From Phaeosaccion multiseriatum (lineage: Eukaryota; Protista; Ochrophyta, other classes), in assembly GCA_965112735.1 (NCBI GenBank), contig OZ218955.1, positions 3,286,001 through 3,350,000 on the forward strand: 64,000 nt of DNA, in the 5' to 3' direction. Position 1 is the stretch's first letter, and every line of letters starts with the position of its first letter. Under the pieces are notes generated by a model. The model did not search any database and was not told the DNA's origin. It was given only the letters and a program-made list of their open reading frames with translations. Shown in pieces: positions 1-64,000 of the stretch. The position numbers were made by a program, and so were the translations under genes.

Positions 1-191
1 GGCGTTTCGCGGTAGGCGTGCCTCATTGGCCCTGCACCAGCTTCTGCTGCTCCTGCGTATCACCAACTGCTGCTGCTGTTGCTGCTCATGCTGCTGCTTG
101 CCGCTGGTGACGTGTCTCTCTCTTCTTCCTCCCCCCCGCTCTCTCTCTCTCGCCTGTTTATACATCTCTCTCTCTCTCTCCTCTCTCTCTC

Positions 192-6239
<6,048 letters not shown>

Positions 6240-6559
6240 CTCTTCTCAAGGCTGTACTAACTAAGGAGGAGGAGAGAAGAGGGGGATTGAAGCGTGATAC
6301 GACTCTATTGGCTCTCCTACTTCCTTTTGTCCAGCTCCCGTGGCTGAGACAGCTATACCTATTCCTTCTGCTCCGTCTTCTCACTCCTATGAACTCTTTC
6401 AATTCTCGTTCTCTTTCCTTCTGATTACTTCTTTCGAATTCTCTCCCAGCGGCCTAGTACAGGAGGGATCGAACAATCTAAAACTCAAAATTCTTCCTCT
6501 CCACCTCAACATCCAGCAGCCCAAGCTCCAACCCCACTCCCAAGGAAGTCACAAATGGC

Positions 6560-8225
6560 TCATAAGTAGCCCACGATGTTCCTGTAGAAGGACTGCCTGA
6601 AGCTGTTCTCCTCCGTCACGGAGAAGAGCAATAGCCTCGCGAACAGGTTGATGGTGGCTCTCTCCTCTTCGCTCTCCCCCCCCCCCTCTCCCTCTCCCTG
6701 CTGCCCTTGGCCCAGGTCCATCGCCTCCCCCATCTTGCTCTCTTCCACTCCTTCGTCCTCATCGCCTGTATCACCAACTGCTGCTGCTGCTGCTGCTGCT
6801 GCTGGCTGGCCATTCATGTCGCGCCTCTCCCTCAGCCAGGCCTCCACCTCCTCCACAGTGGTCATGGGGTCATTCACTGCTGCTCCTCGACCTCCCCTCT
6901 CCCCTTCCCCATCCTCTCCTCCCCGACCCGCCGCTTCTCCTGCTACTGCCGCCGCCGCCGCCGCCGCCGCCGCTGCTGTTCCTTCCGATGACAGGCTCGC
7001 AATGTGACGCCTCAGCCGATGCGCCAGCGTGACCAACGTACTCCTGTCCCTCCATGGAATGTAGGAGTCCTTCTCCCACGACACCCGTCCATTACCCCCT
7101 CCTTCCCACCTCGTGGCTGCCACTTGGGCGGACGGCATGTCTTCAAGAGGCACAAACGTCACGTAGGCAGGGTGTGTTGTATCGTAGAGCAGCGTGAGCA
7201 GCTCGGCCTCGTTCTCAGCCGCTGGTGGGGGGGGGGGGGAGGGACAGCAGCAGTGGTTGAGGGAAGAAGAGTAGGGGGAAAGGAGAGCGGGCGGAAGGCG
7301 GACGGCTGGTCCTGAGATTCAGATTCAGCTTCAACTTGAAGTTCAATTGAGCAGCCCTATCATTAGAAAGAGATGTGTAAGTGCAGAGTGAGATAAATAT
7401 ACACACATGCTTATATACATATATATACATACATAAATAAAAATAAAAAACATCATTTGTGCCGGCCTTATCTTTATGGCCGCCCTTTAGGGTTACTCTT
7501 TACATACTCATTCAAGCCCTTCTCTCTTTACAGATTCCTTCCCTCGGCCCCTCCCTCTTGCTAACCTGTGTTGTAGGTCCGATGGAGGGTGAATTCCTCT
7601 CTGGTTTCGATTTCGGGGTATTTGCCAATGATCTGACAAACAGGCTCCGTGTCCATCACCTCTCCGCTCACTGAGAGAGAAAAAGACACACAGAGAGAGA
7701 GGGAGAGTCGTGAGGTGAGAGAAGGGATAGAGGGAGAAAGAGAGAGAGGGCGGGGGGAGAGAGAGGGAGAGAAAGAGACTGGCCGAGATAGGGTAGAGAA
7801 GAGGAGAGAGAGAGAGGGAGAGAGAGAAAGAGAGAGGGGGGTAGGGAAGAGGAGAGAGAAAGAGAGAGGGGTAGAGAAGAGGAGAGAGAAAGAGAGAGAG
7901 AGAGAGAGGGATAGAGAAGATAGAGAGAGGATTACAAGATACACGACTTGGTCGGGCAGACCTCAGCAGAGCTTTCCAAAAACAAAGGAGGGCTGCCAAC
8001 CCTTGCCGCCCCTTGCCATCCCCTGTTTTTGCCTGACATGCAGTACGCTCCCTCCTCCTCCTTCCTCCCCCTCCTCCTCCTCCTCCTCCCCGTTGTCCTC
8101 ATTCCGTATGAACTCACCTGTTCCCCCTGGTGAGGGCCCACCAGACTATCCAGGTCTTCTTCTTCTTGATCCGTGTCCATCACCCCGACACCAAGTACGG
8201 CTGCCTCCAACCCTGCCTGCCCCTC

Positions 8226-8262
<37 letters not shown>

Positions 8263-8535
8263 GCCCCCTCAGCAGCAGCCTCTTGGGCCATAGCAACCAC
8301 TGCTGCTCCTCCTGCGCCGCCTCCTCCTCCTCCTCCTGCTGCTGCTGCTGCTGCTTCTGCTACTCCTGGAGGTGGTGGTGGAGGATAGCCCGCGTCGGCC
8401 TCGTCCTCATCCGACGATGCTGGAAGTGGAATTCCATGATTGGTGTGGCCATACAAATTGAACAGAAGCTCCATTCTCTCCCAGAAGGGCACGGGCTTGC
8501 TGTTGATGTTGAGAAGGCGTAACCTGTTGTTGTTG

Positions 8536-8598
<63 letters not shown>

Positions 8599-10950
8599 GT
8601 TTCGTTGACAAAGTAGGATGGCAGAAAGGAACAAGTTATGGGTACAGGGACAACATATGTCACTCACTCACTCACTCTCTCACCACCCACCCACTCAGTC
8701 ATCCTTCCACTCACCCACACACTCATTTACTCACTCACTCACACAACCAATCATTCTCACCCTCCCCTCCCCTCTCCTCCCCTCACTTCCTTCCTCCTTC
8801 CCTTTCCTCTCTCACTTTCTGAGGCCTGTCGCCCTCCACAGCTCTTCCGTAAAGGCCGTGCTGCTAGGGGGCCTGGGAAGAGGGAAGGGTTTGAAGTACT
8901 GCTTCTCCCATCCCGGGGACGAGCACTCGGAAACCCCTGTCACCATACTTGGCGAGACGCTGCGCGTACCTCTTGCCCCTGTGATGGGAAGCGAAGCGGA
9001 ACCATTCATGCAATGAATGAACGATGGGAATGAATGGACTGACGGAATGAATGTGTGCAATGAACGACGGAAGAAGTAAGTGGGCTGGATGCGATGAATG
9101 AATGCAGCGTTCAAATCAAATGAGTCATTGGGTCCCATGCACGGATGGACGCAATACACACTCAAACTCACCTTCGGGCGAGGTCGACGGTGTTCACCTT
9201 GGTGGCGAGAGCGTTGGCTGCCCGCGGAGTGGCGTAGACCTTGGTCCCGTCAAAGCACACTCCACAGCAGTCCACATCGAAACCATCGAGCCGCTCGAAC
9301 GGGTCCTTCGCTACCTGCAGGATGATCTGGGGTCATAGGGGCGGGGAGGTGGGTGGGAAAGATGAAAGTTTGAACTTCCAGTTTGCGGTCCAAGCTAGGT
9401 TTTACTCACACAAGAGTTGCCGCTGTAGTACCAACCTGCAGATGGCGCCACCCTGCGCGCACGAAGGTGATTGTCTGAGGGGTTCGAACTGCGTAGTTGA
9501 TGGGGGTGTAACGTCCGTCTACCGCCATAATAAAAGCCTCCGGAGTGCCGGGCTCCGGCTCCGGCTCGGGGGGGTATGACTGAAGGAGAAGGGGGGGGGG
9601 AGGGGCACAAACGGTTACGAGGGGCAACCCGTGAGTGGTGGAAGGGCGTGGGAGGGAGGGAGGGAGGGAGGGGGGAAAGAGGTAGAGAAGGAGGGAGGGA
9701 GAGAGGGAGAGAGAGAGAGAGAGGGAGGAAGAGAGGGAGGGGGGGAGGGAGGGAGAGGGCGGGGAGGGAGGGAAGAGGAAGAGAAGGAGGGAGGAGGAGG
9801 GGAGATTCTGACTGACCTTGACGAATGCTCTGTAAACCTCAAGGATTTTCTGTCTGGCCTCGTCCTCCGTAAGGTCATGCAGGAACAGATCAATGTCACT
9901 CTGGTTTGTGTCGCAGAGGTAGCAGCCGCAGCAGCAGCAGCAAGCAAGCAAGCAAGCAACATGCGACAGGACATGGGATTGAGGGGCAAGGCGGTATGCC
10001 GTGACGATGGGCTTTGCCCTCGGAGAGCGTTGGGTGTGTGACGAGAAGAAAAGATTAGAGCATTGGATGTACGGCAGAGTCACAAAAGCCGAACGGTTAG
10101 CACCGGTAGTGAGAGTTGCAGTACCTGTGCCCAGGGGCCCGGTGGATCGTTACCCCGCTCGGACGTGGGCTTTGCGTACAGAGCTTCGACCTGGATTGAG
10201 GTGTATAGGGGGAATAGAGAGAGAGAGAGGGGCAAGAGAGGGACAGGATGGGTACATAGAGAGAGAAGAGGAATAGAGGTCTCTGAGAAAACGAAGTGAA
10301 GTACTGCACTCACTCAGAAATAAAGGAGAGTAACAGCAGAGGGCGAAGAGGTTCGATGAGACAGAGTCTGGCGTACTGGAAGGGAGTAGACGAAGGCACA
10401 TTCCCCCGTCACAATAGGAACTCACCACGCTGCCACCCGCAACAACCATGCCCTTCCACAGGTCGGGGGTGAAGTACTTCGCATCCAAGATGGAGGGAAG
10501 GGCATCCAGAAACTTACTGTACGACCGAGGCTCCTTGCGTGAGGAAGCAAGGGACAGAGGGAGGGATGGAGGGAGAGGGGAGTCGACGCGCGTCAGGCAT
10601 GCGTGAGAGAGGAAGGGAGGCAGGAGAGACGGAGAGACGCACCACCAACTGCCAAACCGAGCACATACGCAGCGCCACTGTGGAACTCCCCAATTTTTTT
10701 TACGACCCCCTCCTTCCCTCATTCTCTCCATCCCTTCCTTCCTTCCTTCCGCCGCGCAACAAGCCCAACCCTACCATACCTCGCGGAGCTGCACCCCAAA
10801 AAGGGACTTGAAGGAAAACTTGGGCCCACTCGGTGGAGGCCTGGGCGCGAGAGGGCCCTTCTTGTCGTACTTCCCACGCTTCGGGTCGCCAGGGTGAACG
10901 TCCACCATCTTCTGCGTCCATGCTTCGGGAACGTACGGCGGCGTTGCCAT
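6560..10950 (-). CDS. Uncharacterised Pol-beta-superfamily nucleotidyltransferase-like protein, multi-exon; apparent +1 frameshift near 8912
   Basis: The spliced reading is MVVAGGSVVEALY...WAQ|SDIDLFLHDLTEDEARQKI...RTPQTITF..RHLQ|IILQ...GFDVDCCGVCFDG.KVYATPR...NTVDLARR..YAQRLAKYGDRGFRVLVPG..GLRKL. It carries the GS + DxD NTase signature. The last exon is ORF 6560-7162 (ends ...NIVGYL). Confidence 0.75.
8523..8597. repeat. (TTG)n / (CAA)n microsatellite directly before an acceptor of the NTase-like gene
   Basis: Directly visible. Confidence 0.9.
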
Positions 10951-51908: not shown

Positions 51909-52459
51909 TCATCTCTTCGACGAGGTGCTGGATCGACGAGGTGCAGGGATGACTCCGATCTCAATCTTGCGAATCCTGTTGCGCTCGATCATCGCAGCGA
52001 GAGCGGCCCTGACTACGGGGTTCTTACACCCCACAAGCTTTTTCCTCTTCTTCTTCACCTTCTTCACCCCTCCTGACCCTGGCCCTGACGACGGCGGCGA
52101 AGTCGACGAAGTACCAACATCACCACCGCCACCGCCGCCTTCTGTGACGCTGCGGGTGTCAGGACTGGTGCCGCTGCGGATGCTGCTGCCGTCAGTGGTG
52201 GCCTTCGCTGCTGAAGATAGTGGGGCCAAGCTACTGCTGCTGATGCTGCCGATGCTGCTGCTGGTGCTGCTGCTAGTGGTGTTGACCTTTGCCGAAGGTG
52301 GTAGGGGGGTCGATGTGCTGGTGGTGTGTGGTACGGTCAGCGGTGTGCCTCCCTCTGCTCCGGATGGCGCCGATCGCTTTGCAGGGGGGGGAAGGGGTGT
52401 GGTCAGTGTGGGCCTCTCATCATCCGTCCTGCTTCTCTTCCTCTTCTGCTCAGCCACAG

Positions 52460-52491
<32 letters not shown>

Positions 52492-54614
52492 ACTCCGCCT
52501 CCGTCATCCTTTCCTTCCCCAACGCCTCCTCCAGCCTCACCCACACCACCACCACATGTTTCCGAGAGAGCACTCGTCCTCACCAGCGACGCTGCGTTCT
52601 TCTCAGCACACGGCCTCTCTTCGCCTCCTCCTGCTGCTGTATCACCAACTGCTGCTGCCGCTCCTCCTTCTGCTCCGCCTTCATCCGCTAGCACTCGTAC
52701 TCCTCTTCCCGGTGCCTCTGTTGCTGTTGCTGCTGCAGCCAACTTCAGAGTAAGCACAGCTGCGTCCAGGTTCAGACCCTTTCCTCCTCCTCCTCCTCCT
52801 CCTCCTCCGTTGCTGCCTGCCCCTACCCCTACCCCTACCCCTCTATCAACGACCTTCTCATCTCCTCCTTCTTCCTCACTTGCGTAGGGAGAGACAGTCG
52901 CCGCCTCCTCTCCCTCCACCACATCCGTTTCCACGAGCGTGGAGGAGGAGGAAGAAGAGGAGGAGGTTTCACCTTTCGGTGCCGGCTGTTGCTCATCCTC
53001 CTCCTTCCCCTCCTCCTCCTCCTCCTGCTGCCGCTGCTGCTGCCCACTGCTGCTGTTGCTGTCCTCGCTGCTCATGCTGCCGCTTCTTCCTACGCCGTCT
53101 GCGTCGCTCGTCGCGCTGCTGCTGCTGCTGGAGGATGAGCAGGATGCCGAGTCGCTGATTGGGGCGGGCATGGCCAGTGACCCCGCTCCATCCACAGCCA
53201 TCTCTGCTCCTGCCCCATCCACTGCCACTTCCCCCGCCGCTCCTGTCTGTGCCCCTGTCGCCGCCGCCTTTGTGGGCGCTGGGGGCGTGGAGGTCAATGC
53301 CTTGTCTACAGTGCACGTATCCGTCGCTCCGACAGACGAAGTAGGAGAGGCCGAGGAGGAGGTCGGCCCCCCAGCCACTTTAGCAGCAGATATTGGGAAT
53401 ACAGCAGCAGCGGCAGCAGCAGCAGCAGTGGCACTTGCACTTGCACTCAGCGCTGTATCACCAACTGCTGTACTGAGCGCTGCTGCAGCAGCTGGAGCGG
53501 CCTCCGACCCAGACTCAGACGATGCAGCGGTGACAGTAGACGACACCGCCACCACGGCCCCGGCCGCTACCGTATGCGAGTCATGGACATCACCCAAGGG
53601 CGGTGAAGGTGCGAGGAGGGTGGTGGGGGCCTGCGACATCAACTCTGGTGTCTGCAACGCTGCTGCTGCTGCTGCTGCTCCTGCTGCTCCTGCTGTTACT
53701 GCTCCTCCTCCTCCTGCTGCTGCTGCTGCTGCTCCTGTTGCTGCTACTCCTCCTGTTGCGGCTGTGGCTGCCCCTGTCATTGGAGTCCAATAGTCAGGGA
53801 GGTCGGAGGGCCAAAAACCGGTAGTCACCTGCGAATGGCTGCCCAAGACCATTGGATCTTCCTGCGGCTGCTCCAGCAAGAAGGCGTCCTCTTCACTCCA
53901 GTCTTCCTCCTTCTTCTCCGTCGCCGCCCGCACTGCCGCTCGGTTCCTGCTGCTGGTGGTGCTGCCGCTGCTGCCGCCTCGTCGATGGCTGCTGCTGCCA
54001 CTCGTAGTGGCAGAAGTGGTGGTGATGGCCCGTGCCTTATGGATCGGCGCTGAAGACGAGACAGCCCCGTCAACCATTAACAACACAACGCCGTTGGCAG
54101 CCTGCTGAGTCGCCTGCCTCTCTTGCTCCTGGTGCTGCTGCTGGGAGTGGTGGTACTGGTTCTGTAACGCCACAGTAGGGTATGTGTGTTGGGCCGAGTC
54201 CCCTGAGCTCAACACACTTCCCGTCCCCCCGGCCCCACTGGTGGTTGGAGTGGTCGGCGTGCTGGTGGTGGAAGCGCCCCCCTTCTTGCTCGGCCGGCCC
54301 CGCTTCTTGCCGGAGGGGGTCTTCTGCTGTTGATGATACAGCTCCAGCTCAGCAGCCTTGGCTTTGGCGGTCTTCTTCGGGATTCTCCTCGTTCGACCTG
54401 TCGGCCCTGCTGCTGTATTCCCAACTGCCGCTGTATTGCCAACTGCTGTTGCAGTACCAACTGCTGCGGGTGCCGCTGCTGCTCTATCACCAAGTGCTAC
54501 CGCTGCACCGTTCTCCCTTCCTCCTGCACCCCCTTCTGCTGCTGCTGTTACCGCCGCTGCTTCTACGGGCGGCGCTGCTGCTAATGCCATCGCTGCTTCT
54601 ACGGGCGGGGCTAC

Positions 54615-54650
<36 letters not shown>

Positions 54651-57590
54651 TTCCCCTCCGCCTGCGACTCTCACTGCTCCTGCTCTTGCCGTCGCTGTTA
54701 CTGCCCGCGCTGCCCCCCCAGCCACCACGGAACATCCTCCCACATCCACACTTGCCGGATCCTCCGCCACCTCCTCCTCCTGCTCCTCCTCCTGCTTCTC
54801 CACTTCCTTCGCCTCGGCGTCGAGATCAGACGGTGGTAGTCCCACAGCAAGGGAAAAGCCGGGGAGGCTGACGCTGATGGCGGTCCGGGGCGGGCCTCGC
54901 GTGGGTGTTGCGGGCGTTGCGGGCGACAAAGGATCGAAAGCCACCTTCGGTGATGCTGAGAGTGAGGAGCTCGATGAGACAGTGGCGCTGAGAGGGGTGC
55001 GTGGGGCTGCTGTAGGAGCGGGTGGTGGTGGTGCTGCTGCTGCTGTTTCTTCGCCTCCTTCTGCTGCTGTTGCATCACCAACTGGTGCTGCTGCTGCTGC
55101 TGCCACCGATGATGATGCGGACCACGGTGGGAGAGGAGCGAAAGGCGGCGATGCTGCAACATGCGCAGATGGCGATGATGTCACAGCCTCGTCGGCCACA
55201 GCCGCATCTCCTGGCGGTGCTGCTGTATCACCAACTGATGATGCTGCTGCTGCTGCTGCTGCTGGTGCTGCTGTCGCTGTACCACCAACTGCTGCTGCTG
55301 TTGCTGGACGTGCCTGGCCATCCAACCCTCTTCTTGACTTCTTGGGAATGGTGTAGGCCCGGACGGCCTTCGCGGCTTCGCTCTGAGCCGCTGGTGTTGA
55401 AGCACCAACTCCCTCCTTCGACGCCCTCATCTCCTCTCTTTCCTTCCTCCTCGCCTTCTTCTCCGCTGCCGCCTCCAAAGCTGCCGCCTTCTCTCTCGCC
55501 TCCTTCTCCCTCTCCTCGAGCCAGACTTTCTTTCGAATCGCCTTTACTCTCTTCCTCTCCGCCTTCTCCTCTTTCTTCCGCCTCGCTGCTTCCACCTCGT
55601 CCGTATGGCCCAGCATAATCTCCATCTTCCGTCCACCTGTTCCCCTCCCTCCCTTCATAGCCCCTCCTCCTCCTCCTCCTCCTCCTCCTCCTCCTCCTGC
55701 TGCTGCTGCTGCTGCTGTACTGCGAACTGCTGCTGCTGCCCCCCCGCCGTCAACACTACCAGCGCTCCTACGCCTCTTCTTCCTCGAAGTGGGAGGAGTG
55801 GAAGTGGCGGCTACAGAGGAGGTTGTGGGAGGAGTGGTGGAAGGGGCAGTTACAGAGGAGGAGGCAGTTGCAGACAGAGCCCTTGCCCTCGCCTTCTGCT
55901 GCTCGGGAGTGAGTCTCTTTTTCTTCCCTCCTTGCCCCTCCCTTCTTCCTTTCTCTGCCACGCGCATTTGCTCCTCCTCCGCCTCCTCTTCTTTCTCCTC
56001 TTTCTCCTCCTCCTCCTCCTCCTCCTCTGCCTCCGCCGCCTCCTCTTCCTCCTCCTGCCTGCTCTCATCCTGCTGCTGTACGGGAGAGAGAGACAGTGAC
56101 GAAGAAGGGAAGGCTGCGGTTGCGCCTGCCGTCGGATCAAGGCCCCACTCCTCCCTCTCTCTCCGCAAGCCCCAGCGCCGGTAGAGCCTGCGTTTGACCC
56201 ACGTCTCTCCATCCAAGGTCACCTCCACCGCTCCAAACTTGCGATGTCCGGGACTGAAGCGCCCGCGTGTCACTCTGCCCCGCCTCCTCCGCAGCTTCTC
56301 GCTCCAGTCACTCGGGTTACCCATCTTCTTGACTGCACCCCCTCCATCCTCACCCTCACCCTCCCCACCCCCCTTGCTGTTCAAAGGTTCTAGATAGCAA
56401 GCCGCCAACGGATTCATCAACACGACACGGTCGTCCTCTGCCAGCCAGTCGCCATTCGTGTACTTTCCCTTCCGCCTGCGCTCTTCCCTGCTGTGTGCCG
56501 CCTGCGCCTCCCGCAGTTTATCCTCGTCGACCTCCTCCTCTTCCTCCTCCTCGTTCTCCTCCTCCTCCTCCTCCTCCTCCTCCTCCTCCGTTGCCGTCCC
56601 CCCTCTCCCCATGAACTCCTCATCGTCGTCGTACTCTCCCTCTCCCCCTCCCCATCCGCTGCTCAGGTCATCGGACTCAACATCCTCATAATCTTCATCC
56701 TCCTCCTCCTCCTCCTCCTTGCCGTCGTGCAAGGAGGGAGGCAGCAGCATGTCCGCCGAAGACGGCAATTCACTCGCCTCCATCGCTTCACACTCCTCCT
56801 CCTCCTCAAGGTTGAGGAACTGTTGAGTCCTCCTCATCGAGGCTACCTCCTGGGCCGCTCGGCTCGGGCCGGAGCGGGAAGCCGAGCTAATGAAGAATCC
56901 CCCCAAGCCGCCCAAGCCCCCCAGCTCAACGACCTCCACACCGCCAATGCCACCACCGCCAGTACCTTCTTCCCCTCCTCCTCCTGCTCCTGCTCCTCCT
57001 CCTCCTCCTCCTCCTCCTCCTCCTCCTCCTGCTCCTGCTCCTCCTCCTCCTCCTCCTCCTCCTGCCTTTGTGTGCCGACCCTGCCCCGACGCCAACTTCC
57101 CCGACCTCTTTTTGCCCTCCACTCTTTTCGTTTTCGGCCGGGGTTCTCCTGCCGTCCACTCTGCGTCGTCACCACCACCACCATCATGATCATCATCATC
57201 ATGGTCAGCATTCTCCTCCTCGTCACGCCTAACCTTAGGTCTGCCCACGCGACCCCGCTTCTTTCCCTTTGAAGCTCGTCCTCCGACTGATGCTGCTGCT
57301 GATACTTCTGCTGGTGCTGCTGCTGCTGCTGTGGGTGGTTGCACCGGCGACGCCGACGAGTCTTGTGTGGTGGTCCCTGCTGCTACTGTTGCTGCTGTTG
57401 CGGCCGCTACCTCCGCGTCGCCCCCTCCCTCTTGCAGAGTCTGCTCCGTCTTCTTCCCCCTGCGGAACACGCTTTTCTTCTTTCTCTTCTTCTTGCCCTG
57501 CTTCTCCTCGCCGGCGGCCGCGAGGGGAGCAGTAGCAGCATCCCGCGAAGCACGCGAAGCTGAAAAGTCAGGCAGCGTCCCTCTCGCAGG

Positions 57591-57628
<38 letters not shown>

Positions 57629-58106
57629 GTGCAGTACTGTCGGGCGGCTCTTGCACCTCGCCACCTAGGCCCTCCGTCAGACTCACTGGGCTCGCTGACT
57701 GCTTGCCTTTCTCGGGCTGCTGCTGTTCCTCCCGGTCTGCGTCGAGATCGAGATGGTTGAGGGACTTCGCCGCGGGTCGAGACTCTCCCTGCTGCTGCTC
57801 TTCCTCCACTTGCTCCTGAGGCGGCCGGTAGTCCTCAGGAAATATGGGTGGGAATGCCGCCTCGGTCTCCCCGTAGCGTGGACGATGATCAATGCAAAGC
57901 CCCGCGTATTGGCCCTTCTTCTGCGTAATCTTGGAGCAGCCCACGGAGATGCATTGCTGTCCCAGCGGCCGAGCGGCGCTGCCCTGGCCCTTGCTAGCAC
58001 TCGGCAACCCCTTCCGGCTCTTCTTCATTCTGGACCGGCTCGGGGTCACGGTGCCGCCTTCCGCAGCAGCAGGAGCAGGAGAAGCGAGCAGCGGGGAGGG
58101 GTTCAT
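51909..58106 (-). CDS. ~2065-aa low-complexity, probably nuclear protein
   Basis: 6.2-kb stop-free ORF. It has a C-x4-C..C-x2-H motif (CISVGCSKITQKKGQYAGLCIDH), an AT-hook-like KKRGRPSKK, several basic NLS-like runs, a coiled-coil, and a globular-looking island (GDWLAEDDRVVL...VEVTLDGE). First ATG at 58106. Confidence 0.7.
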
Positions 58107-58676
58107 CGGTCGGATGCCCACCTACCCCTCTACCGTTCTTGTCGCTATACTCGTGTATTAGCGGTGGTGGTGACGGCAGCTGCTACCGCTGCGCAGCTGC
58201 AGCGGATGAGCGCATGACACACCAGGACGATCCCACTATAGCCACTCCCTTCGCCCTCTGTGCTGTTTGTTGGCCGTCGTGCTTGGCCCACCGGAAACAA
58301 GCCCCTCAACCCTCTGGCAATGAGGGGCTGGTAACGAGGGTTTCGAGTACACGCCTTAAATTTGCCACGACGCGTTGGCCTTCCTTCCTTCTTCTCACAG
58401 CCTCAACCCTGCTTACGTTGCGCGGCGGCTGGTGGTATTGTGTATCTCTCTTTTTTGGTGGCGATGGCAATGTTTGGGGGAAATAATGTGTGTTTCCACT
58501 CCGGGGTGTTGATGAGAGAGGGGATTTGCCAAATTTCGATTTCCGATTTCCCCCCCACCCCCCCTTCCCCCTCCCCCTGCCTCCATGCATCAGAGCTGTA
58601 CGCTGCAAGACATATGCTATGGGGGGCTACTGGTAAGGCTGGAGACCGACTACCGAGCTGTAATTCGTCACGACCC

Positions 58677-59459
58677 ATGAGTTCCCTCCAAGGAGCCAGA
58701 AGGGGCTTGCTGCTGATGCTGGCACTGCAGCTTTCCCCTGCCGTCCCTTTCGGCCTTGCCACGTCCATCCGCTCAGTAGACATCCATGTCAGGCGGAACG
58801 CTCCAGCAGCTTCTTGGACGAAGTGCGGAGGAGGGGCGTGGCAGCCCTCGCCAAGCCGAAGGACACAAACAGCCGGGAGAGTGGGTTTGCATCTTGAAGC
58901 TCTGCCAACACCGCAGTCAAGAGGAAGAGGATACACAACAAATAGAGGAGCAAGAAGGAGAAGAGTAGGGGGAGAAGCAAGAAGAGCAGCAGCAGGAGGA
59001 GGAGGAGGACGAGGAGGACGAGGAGGAGGAGTGGCGACAGGGCGATCGACCACGCGGAGGCCCCTCCCTCCTCCTCGTCTGCCCCCTTCCTTACTAATCG
59101 ACGTCGGGACTAGTGTGACTCTGATCGACAGTGGGAAACGAGGGGTGGTTGTAGACAAGAGACAAGGCGGCTGGTGGCGCGTGGAGCTTGCAGAAGAGGG
59201 TGAGGTTAGCTCTGCGACGACACGTGAGGAGGGCACGACCCTTCGTAGTGTAATCTCCACTCGGAGGGCCAATCTCGCCGCCTTGGGTGACGCTCCTGAA
59301 GCTCCGCAATCATCGGTAGTGCCCTCATCGCCGTTGTCGGCACCCTTGTCACCCCCCTCTCCGCCATCTGCATCATCGTTTCTTACACCGCCGTCGTTGG
59401 TGGAAGACGCCCTCAAGGGTGGGTACTCCATTCTCTCTCCACCTGCCGTGAGGACTCCC

Positions 59460-59517
<58 letters not shown>

Positions 59518-59611
59518 CGGGGGCGTGGGGAGGAGCTAGTGGGAGTACAGCAACAGCAGCGGCAGCAGCAGCAGCAGCAGCAGGAGGAGGAGGAGGAGGA
59601 CGAGAAGGAGA

Positions 59612-59646
<35 letters not shown>

Positions 59647-60323
59647 GAGGAGGGAGACGAGGACGAGGACGAAAACCGGTAGGAGTCGAGAGTGTCTCTA
59701 GGTCTACGCCAGTAGTGGCGGAAACCATGGGTTCCATCGAGAGCTCCCCTCAAGGCCGAGGGGGGGGGCTAGAGGCTGGGGGCTCAAAGCAGCAGCAGCA
59801 GCAGCAGGAGGAGGAAGAGGAGGATGAGGAGGAGGAGGAGGGGGGGGAGGGGGGGAGGGAGTCCATCCCGACCATCGCTCGCCTCACAGATCCCTCCCTG
59901 CCACACCACTCGTGCTCGGAGTGGGTGGTCTTCTCGGACCTTCACGTGGGCATAAAGACCATAGATGTGTGCCTCCAGGTACGGCTCTCTTTCTCTCTCT
60001 CTTGATCGATCGATCGATCAATCGATCGATCTATCCCTCTCAAACTCCCTCTCTCTCTCTCTCTCATGCGAGTACCAAACCTGATTCAATATATTATTTC
60101 CCCTTTTAGGTTCTCGCTGCCGTGCACGCCGCTGCCGCCGCCCGCCCCTCCTGTGGAGTGCTCTTCTTGGGGGATTGGTGGCACATCAGAGGCGCGCTCA
60201 GAGTGGACCTACTCAACGCCGTGCTAGAAACCCTGCATACCTGGAAATGCCCTTTTGTGGCGATACCAGGCAATCACGATCAGGTTGGTCACCCTCGGAC
60301 CTGCTCACTGCTCTCTCCCACTC

Positions 60324-60408
<85 letters not shown>

Positions 60409-61371
60409 GTCTGTCTGCCTGCCTCTCTGTCTGTCTGTCTGTCTGTCTGTCCTTGCCCTGACACCCTGTCCTGACGTCCTCCATCTGTCCTGACACACCC
60501 TCTCTCTGGTCATCGCATATCAGGTCACTCTCGGGGGCAGCATTCATTCCCTCACACCTTTGCAGTTCGCATTTCGAGATGCCAAGCAAGGTAGGTAGGG
60601 TAGGTAGGTATGTGGGTAGGGTGGGTAGGTGTGTAGGTTGTGCGTGTGTGGGTGTGGGTGTGGGTGTGGGTGTGGGTGTGGGTGTGCCTGTCTGGCGTTT
60701 GTGTGTGTGCGTGTGCGTAAGGGGGAGGAGGCAAGAAGCCGTGGCCAGCCCAACCCTAACTCAGAGTGTATATATGTCCTGGTTTGCTTTCCTTCCCGTC
60801 CGCCTCCCCCCTGTTCTATATCCTCCCTCCTTTCTCCTTTCCTATGTACTCCTACTACTCCTCCCTTCGTTTCGGACCGGCCTCTGTGACCAACCTTCGT
60901 GCCCCACCCCCCAATACACACATAAACACACACACGCTAACACTCACACACTCACACACCTACACCCACACACCCCACGCTCCTCCCCACCCACGCGCAC
61001 GTACGCACAACCCCCTACACACACACCAACACACGCACGCCCACCCACACACACACCCACCCACACACATGCAGCCGTGGTGCTTGCCGAGCCAACTCTC
61101 TTCCTTGACGCGCTCTTCATCCCCCACCAGCGCAACTCGTCCCACCTCGAGCTGTTGTTGCGCTCCCCAGAGGCCCGAGCGTCGCAGGCTGTCTTCTGCC
61201 ACGCTGACGTCAGAGGTATATGGGTAGGGATAGGGGTAGAACATAGGCAGGCATATAGGCAGGGGTGTGGGCACGCTTATGGGCAGCCAAGGGCAGGCCT
61301 ATTGACAATGCGGGGGTGACTTGCTTTTTATTTATACGACTCTTCCCTTCTCTTCTCCCCACTCCCACGCA

Positions 61372-61425
<54 letters not shown>

Positions 61426-63617
61426 ATTCCTTCAAACATATCTCGCACTCTCTCTCTCTCCCTCTTTTTCTATCTCCCTCCTCCCCCCCCCCCCCCCCCC
61501 CGCCCTCTCCTCTTCCTCCCTCCCCTCTGCCAGGAGCGGCCATGAACGACGGGGTGTGTAGCAGCGCAGACATATCTGCCTCGGCCTTCCCCCCCTCCAT
61601 CCCCGTCTACAGCGGGCATTTCCACAGGCCACACCGGGTCGTGCATAGACCGCGCGGAGCAAGGAAAGGGACCAAACTCAAACTCGAAACGGCAGTAGCA
61701 GCAGCAGCAGCAGCAGCAGTTGGTGATACAGCAGCAGTTGGTGATATAGCAGGGGCCAGCGAGGGCGAGCGGAGCGTGCGATACGTGGGCTCTCCGTACC
61801 AATGCTCCGTTAACGAACACGGCCAAGAGAAGGCGCTGCTCGTGCTGCGGAGACAGGCCGCTGATGATACAGCTGTTGGTGGTGCAGCAGTTGGTGATAC
61901 GGCAGCAGCAGGGCGGGGACCGTGGACGGAGGTGGAGACGCTGCCCCTTTTTCTGTGAGTGGTGTGTGTTTATGTGTGTGTGAGAAGAGAGAGCGTGTAC
62001 CCGCGCGTGTGTGTGACCGCGTTTCTCTCTCTCCCTATAAGTTTGAGCGTGCGTGAGAGTCGATGAGTCCTCCACTCATTCCGATACTTACTACACTTAC
62101 GTAGTTTTTCGCGTGATGGCACGGGGGCCTCACACCTCTGTTGCAGCTACGCCCTGGGGCCTGTGGCTGCTTGCTCATGGGGGCGGCTGTGTTAACGCTC
62201 GTGTTAACGCTCGTACAAATGCCTTCCTCTTGCCCTTGCCCTCCCCCTCTTCCTTCGATGTTCTTTCCCCTCTCCCTCCTTTTCAGGGGACGAAAGTTCC
62301 ATAAACTATCCCACCTAACGAACAATGGACAAGGAAGAGGAGGAGATGGAGAATGGGGACCCTCAGACGCCTCCCTCAAGCAGCAGCAGCAGCAGCAGCA
62401 GGCATATGGGCCAGAAGGAGGAGGAGGAGCAGGCATATGGGGAAACGTGTCGCACGTATCTCCCGGAGACCGAGTGGTGTGGACCGTTCCCGACCCCGCC
62501 TCACCGCCCCCTGGCGTGCGAGAGAGCGTGTCGCGCATGCGAGCGGGCGGGGTGGAGGTGGAGTTGAGACAGCAGTCGTCGCCAGCTGGGAAGGGGGGGC
62601 TCCTCCCTCCCCCCGTGGAGCGCTACACTAGCCCATCGTCTCTGTCTTCTGCTGCTCTCTTTGAGGAGTTCCTTCGGTCCGAGCAACTGCAGCAGCAGCA
62701 GCAGCAGCAGGCTCAAGACTCACAAGACGACGATGTTGAGCGTAGCACCAACGGCAGCACCAACTCCTCCTCATCATCCGACATGTCGTCGGCATCTGCT
62801 GATGCCCTCCACCTCGGCTTGAGCCTCATTGAACAGGCGGCGGAGGCACTCACAAATGGCTCAGCGCTCTCCTCCACCCTCGGAAAGGGCGCTCTGTCTC
62901 AATCGAGCGGTGGAGGAGCGGGGGGGGGTACCACTAGTCAGACCTCTTTGGTGCTGGAGTCTGTGACCTTGAGTCGCTTCGGACCCTTCCGGAGGCCTGT
63001 GAAGTATCCGCTGGACGGGAGAGGCGTGGTGCTGTTGAGAGGGGCGAACTTGGACGGGGGCGGCGCTGATAGGTAGGTATGAGTATTTGGCATATGGCAA
63101 CGTGAGATGCCAACTGTGATGTGATTGCAATGCTCTCTGTCTCTCCCTCCCTCTCTTCTCCCTCTATGATGTTTAAACTCAGTTTTATTTGTGCGTAGTG
63201 AAACTCACTTCAGAGGCTTCTACTCCCCCTTTTTTCCACCGCTCCAGTAACGGCGCTGGAAAGACGTCCCTGGCTGTGGCTGCCCTGTGGGCTCTAACAG
63301 GGTCCGTCGACATGAGGCCTGCCACAGGTCAGTACAGTCAGTGAGTCAGTGAGTGAGTGAGTGGGGGAGTCAATGAGGTGGTGAGACCATCAGGCAGTCA
63401 GCGAGACAAATGAGTCAATGAGGTTGATGAAGGTTTGAGTCCGTGAGTCTCGGCAGCCTGGATAGGAGCGGCATACCTCACAGAACGACGCACTCAACTC
63501 ACGCCCTCCACTTCGTGCCCATCAATGCCTGACTGCCGTCCCCTGCCTTCGCTTGCGAATCTATCCACGCATTCAAAGATGGCCGAGTGACAGACGTCGT
63601 GTTCCACAGGGGCAAAC

Positions 63618-63661
<44 letters not shown>

Positions 63662-64000
63662 GGCAAAGGAGGTAAAGGCAAAAGAGGTGTGAACAGCGTA
63701 GCGAGCGGTGTCGCAGAGGTGACCGTCCAAGGTGTTCTGAATGGCAAGGCGCTTGAGGTGACGCGCCGCAAGGGGTCAAGGGTGAATAGCCTCTCGGTGC
63801 TGTACGGGGGTGTGGACATGACTCGCCAGACGCCGTCGGACACACAGACGCAGGTAAGTACGATACGTAAGAGTAGATAAGAAATTATTATTTTTGGTAC
63901 GCTGAAAGTGCACAACCTTTGAATGTTGATATTGAGTGTTGAATGTTGAATGAAAAGTGAAGGTTGATTCATGAGTATCGTACGTACAGGACAGAAGCAT
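58677..64000 (+). CDS. SbcD (Mre11-like phosphoesterase) - SbcC (Rad50-like ABC ATPase) fusion, predicted plastid-targeted; truncated by window end
   Basis: Phosphoesterase motifs VFSDLH, FLGDWWH, IPGNHDQ, FCHADV, YSGHFHRPH and YVGSPYQ. These are followed in the same spliced frame by LESVTLSRFGPF..VVLLRG.N..D|SNGAGKTS (Walker A)..ALWALTG and AEVTVQG..LEVTRR. Leader LLLMLALQLSPAVP-F. Confidence 0.88.

Follow-up and report, generated by a model that had tools for sequence, protein, structure and literature searches.

Gene model and catalytic motifs

The stretch of Phaeosaccion multiseriatum DNA analysed here (64,000 nucleotides of contig OZ218955.1; hereafter the window) contains near its end the first part of a gene for a predicted single-chain protein that combines an Mre11/SbcD-type nuclease with a Rad50/SbcC-type ATPase. 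On the plus strand, one open frame is formed by eight exons with GT-AG borders, running from 58677 to 63853, and by the start of a ninth at 63990 (Table 1). The phases agree at all junctions, and the eight exons comprise 3246 nt in frame, as checked by hand and by script. From the amino terminus, the frame contains a hydrophobic segment, a basic region, an SH3/KOW-like barrel, the Mre11/SbcD phosphoesterase, a linker and the Rad50/SbcC head with Walker A. The gene is truncated at 64000, inside the ATPase, and only about the first 190 ATPase residues are within the window. By homology, the part beyond should comprise about 700–800 residues with the coiled coil, the CxxC zinc hook, the signature motif and Walker B.

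The region is GC-rich (52–64%), and microsatellite-filled gaps separate the coding blocks. Almost every intron of the fused gene is packed with a microsatellite of its own. Long low-complexity inserts are found in exons 1, 5, 6 and 8, some of them made of a dispersed repeat which is described at the end of the text. An Ala/Gly-rich insert built of this repeat breaks the SbcD-type block of exon 5.

Table 1. Exons of the fused gene, predicted segments of its product, and other features of the window (E, expectation value; HSP, high-scoring segment pair).
Feature	Position	Strand	Description or evidence
Signal-peptide-like segment (predicted)	58677..58748	+	24 residues, core GLLLMLALQL; Kyte-Doolittle mean 2.26 over 10 residues (Ectocarpus 2.13)
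Transit-peptide-like basic region	58749..59084	+	~118 residues, net charge ~+18; rich in Arg/Ser/Gly/Ala/Pro, with an RGG-rich stretch
SH3/KOW/Tudor-like five-stranded beta-barrel (predicted)	59085..59291 (residues 137–205)	+	Alignment, AlphaFold2 model, fold searches
Exon 1 (434 codons)	58677..59978	+	Final element phosphoesterase motif I, D-L-H at 59937–59945 (FSDLH)
Exon 2: motifs II (GD..H; LGDWWH) and III (GNHD; PGNHDQ)	60110..60283	+	Metallophos/PdeM/SbcD E ~1e-3; 59–74% identity to relatives
Exon 3: family-invariant His (GGSIHSL)	60524..60590	+	74% identity to Ectocarpus residues 457–479; invariant column H465
Exon 4: motif IV His (CHADV)	61075..61215	+	60% identity to Ectocarpus residues 480–527
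Exon 5: motif V (GHFHRPH) and SbcD-type YVGSPYQ..E..GQ.K block	61534..61954	+	NCBIfam SbcD PRK10966 E 3e-4
Exon 6: nuclease C-terminal part (VSPGDRVVWTV...VEVELR), low-complexity linker, first ATPase-head strands	62287..63072	+	Ectocarpus residues 624–802, single HSP
Exon 7: Walker A / P-loop (S-NGAGKTS)	63248..63327	+	AAA_23 E 5e-3; 70% identity to Ectocarpus residues 803–829
Exon 8: ATPase head lobe I	63579..63853	+	48% identity to Ectocarpus residues 830–913
Exon 9, start	63990..64000	+	AG acceptor at 63988–63989; cut by window end
Intron microsatellite, CTGT repeats	~60326–60452
Intron microsatellite, GTGGGT repeats	~60640–60690
Intron microsatellite, TG repeats	~61374–61423
Intron microsatellite, C run	~61484–61502
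GCAGTTGGTGATAC copies	61716–61729, 61734–61747, 61887–61900	+
GCAGTTGGTGATAC copies, ~20 others	e.g. 52639, 53455, 50838, 20328, 6768, 57	-
2070-residue open frame	51909–58121	-	Head-to-head with the fused gene, gap ~550 bp

An alignment of 24 full-length relatives defined the invariant columns of the nuclease (DLH, GD..H.R, PGNHDQ, the His after GG, H.D, GH.H.P and Y.GS) and of the ATPase (NG.GK, the hook C..C, LSGG..RR and DE). All family-invariant columns which fall in the window are kept in the Phaeosaccion gene. The metal-binding motifs of Mre11/SbcD nucleases occur in their usual order (DxH, GD, GNH[DE], H, GHxH). They are followed by the SbcD-type capping or C-terminal domain: the family profile aligns with residues 203–381 of Escherichia coli SbcD, exon 5 matches positions 225–268 of the SbcD model PRK10966, and a conserved GDRVV...VEVE block lies in exon 6. 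The P-loop, SNGAGKTS, spans the junction of exons 6 and 7, and its residues N804, G805, G807 and K808 are invariant in the family. The orthologues, which are 1300–1720 residues long, additionally have invariant C1249 and C1252, LSGG(Q), D1559-E1560 and a SbcC_Walker_B match. The statement of the initial annotation that all phosphoesterase motifs and a Walker A lie in one spliced frame was borne out by the exon model, the in-frame junctions and the invariant columns. From its sequence, the window protein is predicted to have nuclease activity.

Exon-by-exon scans against Pfam and NCBIfam gave weak matches below the cut-offs, and phmmer searches of the PDB with single exons returned noise only. 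The Metallophos family of Pfam, weak on exon 2 alone, is reached in the orthologues.

The long low-complexity inserts, some of them of the dispersed repeat, would suit an inactive or decaying copy, be it a pseudogene or a catalytically dead scaffold. However, there is not one frame break over the 3246 nt, none of the family-invariant catalytic residues within the window has been lost, and the inserts sit in frame in poorly conserved loops. We therefore regard an inactive copy as very unlikely.

The two halves might also belong to two adjacent genes, one SbcD-like and one SbcC-like, which were falsely joined by the splice model. As no public RNA run holds the stretch, the test for a single chain was drawn from relatives. 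The four public runs which contain the stretch derive from one sample and include the introns of the gene, for which reason we take them to be DNA. Joints in these DNA runs (61751–61886 and others) were rejected as splicing; they connect copies of the dispersed AVGDTA repeat, and their ends are not those of splice sites.

Exon 5 alone, used as the query of an exhaustive HMMER search, retrieved 143 proteins, many of them 1100–1720 residues long with the match at about residues 270–430. In the long relatives tested, Metallophos, AAA_23/SMC_N and SbcC_Walker_B are found together in one chain. Upon tblastn comparison of the 143 relatives with the window, the ends of the HSPs were the exon ends, and the protein coordinates were contiguous across the exon junctions. 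For the Ectocarpus siliculosus protein (P0153) the HSPs extend, exon by exon, to residue 400, to 458, and over 457–479, 480–527, 525–592, 624–802, 803–829 and 830–913. Exon 6 had been described in the initial annotation as bridging the two halves without a stop. It is indeed an open frame, and the single HSP which it forms with Ectocarpus takes in the conserved block at the C-terminus of the nuclease as well as the first ATPase-head strands. For the relative P0043, the gene is a single uninterrupted open reading frame (ORF) of 3975 nt on its contig, and the orthologue from Seminavis robusta carries the source label ‘expressed’. In this diatom, the fused gene is present twice, as nearly identical copies on separate scaffolds (P0060 and P0194), and both bear that label.

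A false join would agree with the lack of RNA evidence for this alga, with the low complexity of the exon 6 linker and with the unfused state of the nearest non-eukaryotic relative (see below). It is difficult to reconcile with the single HSP over exon 6 and with dozens of single-chain relatives, the one with the uninterrupted ORF among them, and we consider it extremely improbable. Of the single-chain SbcD-SbcC protein initially proposed, the frame and the collinear relatives uphold the fusion, but the window itself contains no more of the SbcC half than the first 190 or so residues.

Family membership and origin

By alignment, the window gene, which is nuclear and contains introns, is an orthologue of the fused family of ochrophyte, prasinophyte and streptophyte algae. 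It has the arrangement of this family, with the nuclease first and the ATPase in the same polypeptide, as seen from the in-frame splice model, the exon 6 bridge and the single-chain relatives. Named relatives come from brown algae (Ectocarpus spp., Scytosiphon, Laminaria and Discosporangium), from Tribonema minus, Nannochloropsis/Microchloropsis, an ochromonad and diatoms (Nitzschia, Seminavis, Cyclotella), and from Ostreococcus and Closterium.

The closest full-length relatives are the E. siliculosus protein (1640 residues, annotated as ‘DNA double-strand break repair rad50 ATPase’) and the T. minus protein KAG5184331.1 (P0080, 1723 residues). Both are collinear with the window gene over all eight exons, with 48–74% identity in the conserved exons, and share its layout of leader, barrel, nuclease, linker and ATPase. 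They differ in their low-complexity inserts, and the window gene ends after the N-lobe of the ATPase.

Fusions of Mre11 and Rad50 were reported for Phaeodactylum, Micromonas and Physcomitrella as the ‘moss-diatom-prasinophyte group’ (Yoshida, Claverie and Ogata, 2011; Virol J 8:427; PMC3175470). The organisms with the fusion also retain normal, separate Mre11 and Rad50, and the viral gene pool was proposed as the source of the fusion (PMC3175470). Including the taxa of that study, all named holders of the fused gene are photosynthetic. The window gene is very probably one more member of the group, an assignment made from taxa and architecture and not by alignment of the published accessions (B7FXD6 and others). 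Common to both are the order of nuclease and ATPase in one chain, the hosts (diatoms, prasinophytes and streptophytes) and a placement apart from the canonical clades of bacteria, archaea and eukaryotes. The published account is, however, silent on organelle targeting, on an N-terminal barrel and on an unfused relative in a phage cassette. Fused versions had initially been called sporadic. The fusion is real, but it was published in 2011, many algal genomes carry annotated examples, and it constitutes a widespread algal family (PMC3175470).

Canonical bacterial SbcCD models (TIGR00619, PRK10966, TIGR00618) were missed by a wide margin, the exons reaching 10–20 bits and the orthologues 19–30 bits against cut-offs of 77–478. 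For PRK10966, the orthologues score about 28 bits against a cut-off of 450; conversely, the algal nuclease profile gives E. coli SbcD 33.6 bits, and the identity of phage records is about 26%. When the family profile was compared with the PDB, Rad50 was found at E 1e-17 and SbcD/Mre11 structures at E 3e-8 to 1e-5. With E. coli SbcD/SbcC and phage T4 gp47/gp46, the family shares the Mn-phosphoesterase (DxH/GD/GNHD/H/GHxH) and the ABC-type ATPase with coiled coil and zinc hook, but those systems consist of two separate polypeptides. By analogy, the shared job is likely to be the opening of hairpins and blocked ends to start recombination. The initial view that the protein is not a canonical Mre11/Rad50 agrees with the missed NCBIfam cut-offs and with the very long branch on which E. 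coli SbcD is placed in the tree described below.

To trace the origin of the family, 185,579 prokaryote genomes were scanned with two family-invariant peptide patterns, to which the reach of the scan is limited. It gave one distant, unfused Clostridiaceae locus with 23% identity. A cyanobacterial origin or endosymbiotic transfer was rejected, as these two patterns detected no cyanobacteria in the scan.

A search of IMG/VR yielded 71 viral loci. One of them (L003; IMGVR_UViG_2716884848_000001, 1–9068) is the nearest non-eukaryotic relative of the algal family. It contains a cassette of an SSB, a UvsX-like recombinase, an SbcD-like, an SbcC-like and a RuvC-like protein, in which the SbcD-like (342 residues) and SbcC-like (693 residues) proteins are encoded by overlapping ORFs. 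Its nuclease is 43% identical to that of Ectocarpus over 260 residues (E 3e-60), and its score with the algal nuclease profile is 292 bits, compared with 151 for the next viral locus and 34 for E. coli SbcD. Unlike the algal genes, L003 is an unfused pair in a phage-like cassette and has neither leader nor barrel.

A maximum-likelihood tree of the nuclease domain (73 rows, 298 columns, LG+C20 posterior mean site frequency model; unrooted) was computed without canonical eukaryotic Mre11, T4 gp47 and Mimivirus R555. The window protein was left out and placed by the best matches of its exons, which are to Ectocarpus and Tribonema. The 24 algal rows, which include diatoms, Ostreococcus and Closterium, form one group with L003 (support 97/94), and the ochrophyte-type members are a clade within the tree (95/87). 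The branch of L003 is long, and its place within the joint group is ambiguous. Eight fused viral genes form a separate clade (100/99), which is a near neighbour of the algal group. Through its Ectocarpus and Tribonema matches, the window gene thus groups with the diatom, prasinophyte and streptophyte fusions outside the canonical clades. Judged by these sequence comparisons, a source in the phage or viral gene pool, with an algal fusion independent of the viral ones, fits the data, as in PMC3175470. The prokaryote- or virus-type kinship suggested in the initial annotation is consistent with the phage-like cassette as nearest relative and with the neighbouring fused viral clade.

Other IMG/VR loci (L004, L006–L011) have fused SbcD-SbcC genes of about 1000–1400 residues in viral contigs, which fall in the separate, well-supported clade and do not contain the barrel. 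They may correspond to the environmental R555-like genes of Yoshida et al.

In view of these relationships, the gene might be a viral-derived endogenous element, or an antiviral or selfish module, with a site of action other than organelles, such as the nucleus or the secretory pathway. Its closest non-algal relatives are viral contigs, a language-model comparison placed the nuclease domain next to viral metallophosphatases (a lead only), and a viral source was proposed earlier (PMC3175470). However, the gene has seven spliceosomal introns and a host-like composition, and its orthologues form a well-supported clade across the ochrophyte classes, all of which argues for long vertical residence rather than recent insertion. 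Furthermore, a DNA-end nuclease makes little sense in the secretory lumen. A viral module of this kind is quite unlikely.

Leader and barrel

In complex red-derived plastids, a signal peptide, a Phe (ASAFAP-type) and a basic transit region constitute the plastid import route. The leader of the window protein has a short basic start, a hydrophobic core of ten residues, S-P-A-V-P and then a Phe (58749–58751). The region which follows is net positive and hydroxylated with few acidic residues, as is usual for transit peptides. In this presumed transit region, just before the barrel, lies an Arg/Gly-rich (RGG-like) stretch (58950–59060; residues ~92–128), which could bind nucleic acid if it is kept in the mature protein.

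We surveyed the leaders of 38 relatives which have a Met start and at least 40 residues before the barrel, using a crude hydropathy and motif count rather than a trained predictor. A comparable hydrophobic stretch near the N-terminus was found in 26 of them, and in 12 of these 26 a small residue and then Phe follow shortly after. Examples are Ectocarpus (L-S/F), P0012 (S-G/F), P0017 (M-S/F), P0091 (T-S/F) and P0038 (R-A/F); Scytosiphon has L-A/F further along its N-terminus, and several diatom-like members have G/F, S/F or A/F. A stretch of net positive charge precedes the barrel in every one of the 38. The T. minus protein starts differently: its residues 1–40 contain T-R-R-A-L-L and then a hydrophobic stretch ending in A-L-A, which is twin-arginine-like rather than a plain signal peptide and may be an artefact of the gene model.

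The layout of hydrophobic segment, small residue with Phe, and basic stretch points to plastid import of the many ochrophyte-type members which have it, and the window protein is quite likely to be plastid-targeted. The plastid-type leader of the initial annotation is in keeping with the hydrophobic segments and Phe sites of the relatives; the Pro before its Phe is unusual, and the localisation is a prediction. Taken together, the gene probably encodes a nuclear single-chain Mre11/SbcD-Rad50/SbcC enzyme which is directed to the plastid and processes DNA ends, both address and function being inferred.

Several points weigh against this reading. The public RNA runs offer no transcript evidence for this alga, and the C-terminal two-fifths of the protein, with the hook and Walker B, are outside the window. 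The Phe is preceded by Pro (A-V-P/F), which is atypical for a signal-peptidase site; P0139 likewise has T-P/F. An in-frame ATG at 58614, 63 nt upstream, is an alternative start which would lengthen the protein by 21 residues. Several relatives start without a hydrophobic core and look mitochondrial or like truncated models. Finally, the literature searched contained neither biochemical nor localisation data on members of the family.

The same fused enzyme could instead act in mitochondria, or in both mitochondria and plastids. Arg/Ser-rich presequences without a hydrophobic core in P0114, P0043, P0161, P0062 and P0030 point in this direction, as do the simple organelle-type presequences of the green-lineage members, which are ambiguous between plastid and mitochondrion. 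The window gene, Ectocarpus, Scytosiphon and several diatom-like members have, however, the layout of the plastid route, and of the members which lack a hydrophobic start, at least one, P0125, is a truncated model (as compared with P0152 of the same 90% cluster). A mitochondrial or dual address is accordingly unlikely.

The initial annotation had noted a beta-rich segment behind the leader and proposed an extra SH3/KOW-like module. The segment is conserved: together with 19 relatives (20 members in all), it shares the pattern G-D-x-V ... G-x-V ... G-G-W-[WY]-x-V-x-L ... V-K-x-R-x-x-Q-L, with G29, W30 and R60 invariant in the alignment. AlphaFold2 predicted a five-stranded, bent antiparallel SH3-like barrel of the usual size (~50–60 residues), with a mean predicted local distance difference test score of 80.2 and strands at 10–13, 19–25, 30–35, 56–60 and 64–66. 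Foldseek matched this model to the KOW domains of Spt5 and ribosomal protein eS4, the MutS2 KOW, CAP-Gly and NdhS (template modelling score ~0.6, E 0.012 or weaker). A fold search independent of Foldseek placed the NusG KOW first (Z-score 8.0, root-mean-square deviation 2.1 Å over 52 residues); Spt5 KOW, Tudor, PWWP and NdhS came next, with Z of 6–7.6. The module initially proposed is thus supported by the predicted structure and its KOW/Tudor matches.

Although the predicted barrel superposes on NusG KOW, Spt5 KOW, Tudor, NdhS and MutS2 KOW, with Z-scores from 8.0 down to 6.2 for the KOW, Tudor and NdhS matches, it stays below every Pfam cut-off. The Pfam scan gave no family at its cut-off, the best being CRR42-like with 16.4 bits against 25. 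Kinship to SipA/CRR42 (DUF3148; PF11347, NF045913) was rejected: two of the 20 members match, below the cut-off, the NCBIfam scan gave 14.6 bits versus 100, and other SH3/OB families match equally often. The modelled barrel is assigned to a fold class only and not to a family, because Z-scores of 7–8 are typical for small common folds and the Foldseek E-values are no better than 0.012.

A profile of the barrel, a module of about 55 residues, detected it in 56 relatives, in each of them N-terminal to the nuclease; none was found in the green-lineage members, the viral loci or L003. A barrel at the N-terminus of the Ostreococcus protein P0168, which had been considered, was excluded by the same search. 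By its distribution in the profile search, the barrel is a trait of the ochrophyte-type clade and not of the window gene alone, which goes beyond the initial annotation. No description of the module was found in the literature.

Proposed role and neighbouring sequence

SbcCD, Mre11-Rad50 and T4 gp46/47 assemble from two nuclease and two ATPase subunits, close their heads upon ATP binding, cleave ends and hairpins and start recombination. On this model, the protein would enter the endoplasmic reticulum by its N-terminal hydrophobic segment and, guided by the basic transit-like region, pass on to the plastid stroma. There it would dimerise by the nuclease domain and the zinc hook, two chains giving the usual assembly with two nucleases and two ATPases. 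ATP binding would close the heads on DNA, and the nuclease would cut plastid DNA at ends that are broken, capped by a hairpin or blocked by protein. From the processed ends, RecA-type strand invasion or recombination-dependent replication could start, as with gp46/47 in phage T4. The roles in the plastid may include double-strand-break repair, stability of inverted repeats and recombination-dependent replication. The KOW/Tudor-like barrel would be, and this is a guess, a clade-specific adaptor which attaches the enzyme to nucleic acid or to a partner in the nucleoid.

A wider proposal, which we put forward tentatively and as rather doubtful in its entirety, is that a recombination nuclease of phage type was fused and recruited to both green and red-derived plastids, where it would have the role of T4 gp46/47, opening DNA ends so that recombination-dependent replication is primed and inverted repeats stay stable; in the ochrophyte-type clade, the KOW/Tudor-like adaptor would tie the enzyme to a partner in the plastid nucleoid, a polymerase or the ribosome. 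If this is true, the missing end-processing step would join the set of phage-derived DNA enzymes of organelles.

Plastid DNA replication is widely thought to rely on recombination. We found no report of an enzyme which processes broken ends or hairpins of plastid DNA in algae with red-derived plastids. A conserved, phage-like Mre11–Rad50 single chain with a predicted plastid address is a concrete candidate for this step. Transformable relatives, among them Phaeodactylum, Nannochloropsis, Ostreococcus and Physcomitrium, allow this to be tested, and the clade-specific barrel is a handle for a partner search. As the fusion was already known, the window gene adds one more orthologue to it. The literature search found no report on plastid SbcCD, none on the published accessions beyond Yoshida et al. 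and none of a chloroplast address of the fused family; in silico, our analysis extends the 2011 paper by this address, the clade-specific barrel and the relative in a phage cassette.

The dispersed repeat mentioned above contains a 14-nt motif, GCAGTTGGTGATAC, which occurs in 24 copies in the window (with up to two mismatches) compared with 0.26 expected. The copies often lie inside coding sequence, where they read A-V-G-D-T. The contig depth at 61858–62038 is about 100 times that of the neighbouring bins, which indicates that this segment is highly repeated genome-wide. Many copies of the AVGDTA repeat are also found in the 2070-residue ORF upstream of the fused gene, which is of extremely low complexity, with runs of Ala, Gly, Ser and Glu. 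A Pfam scan of this ORF gave no domains, and it was rejected as a part of the fused gene.

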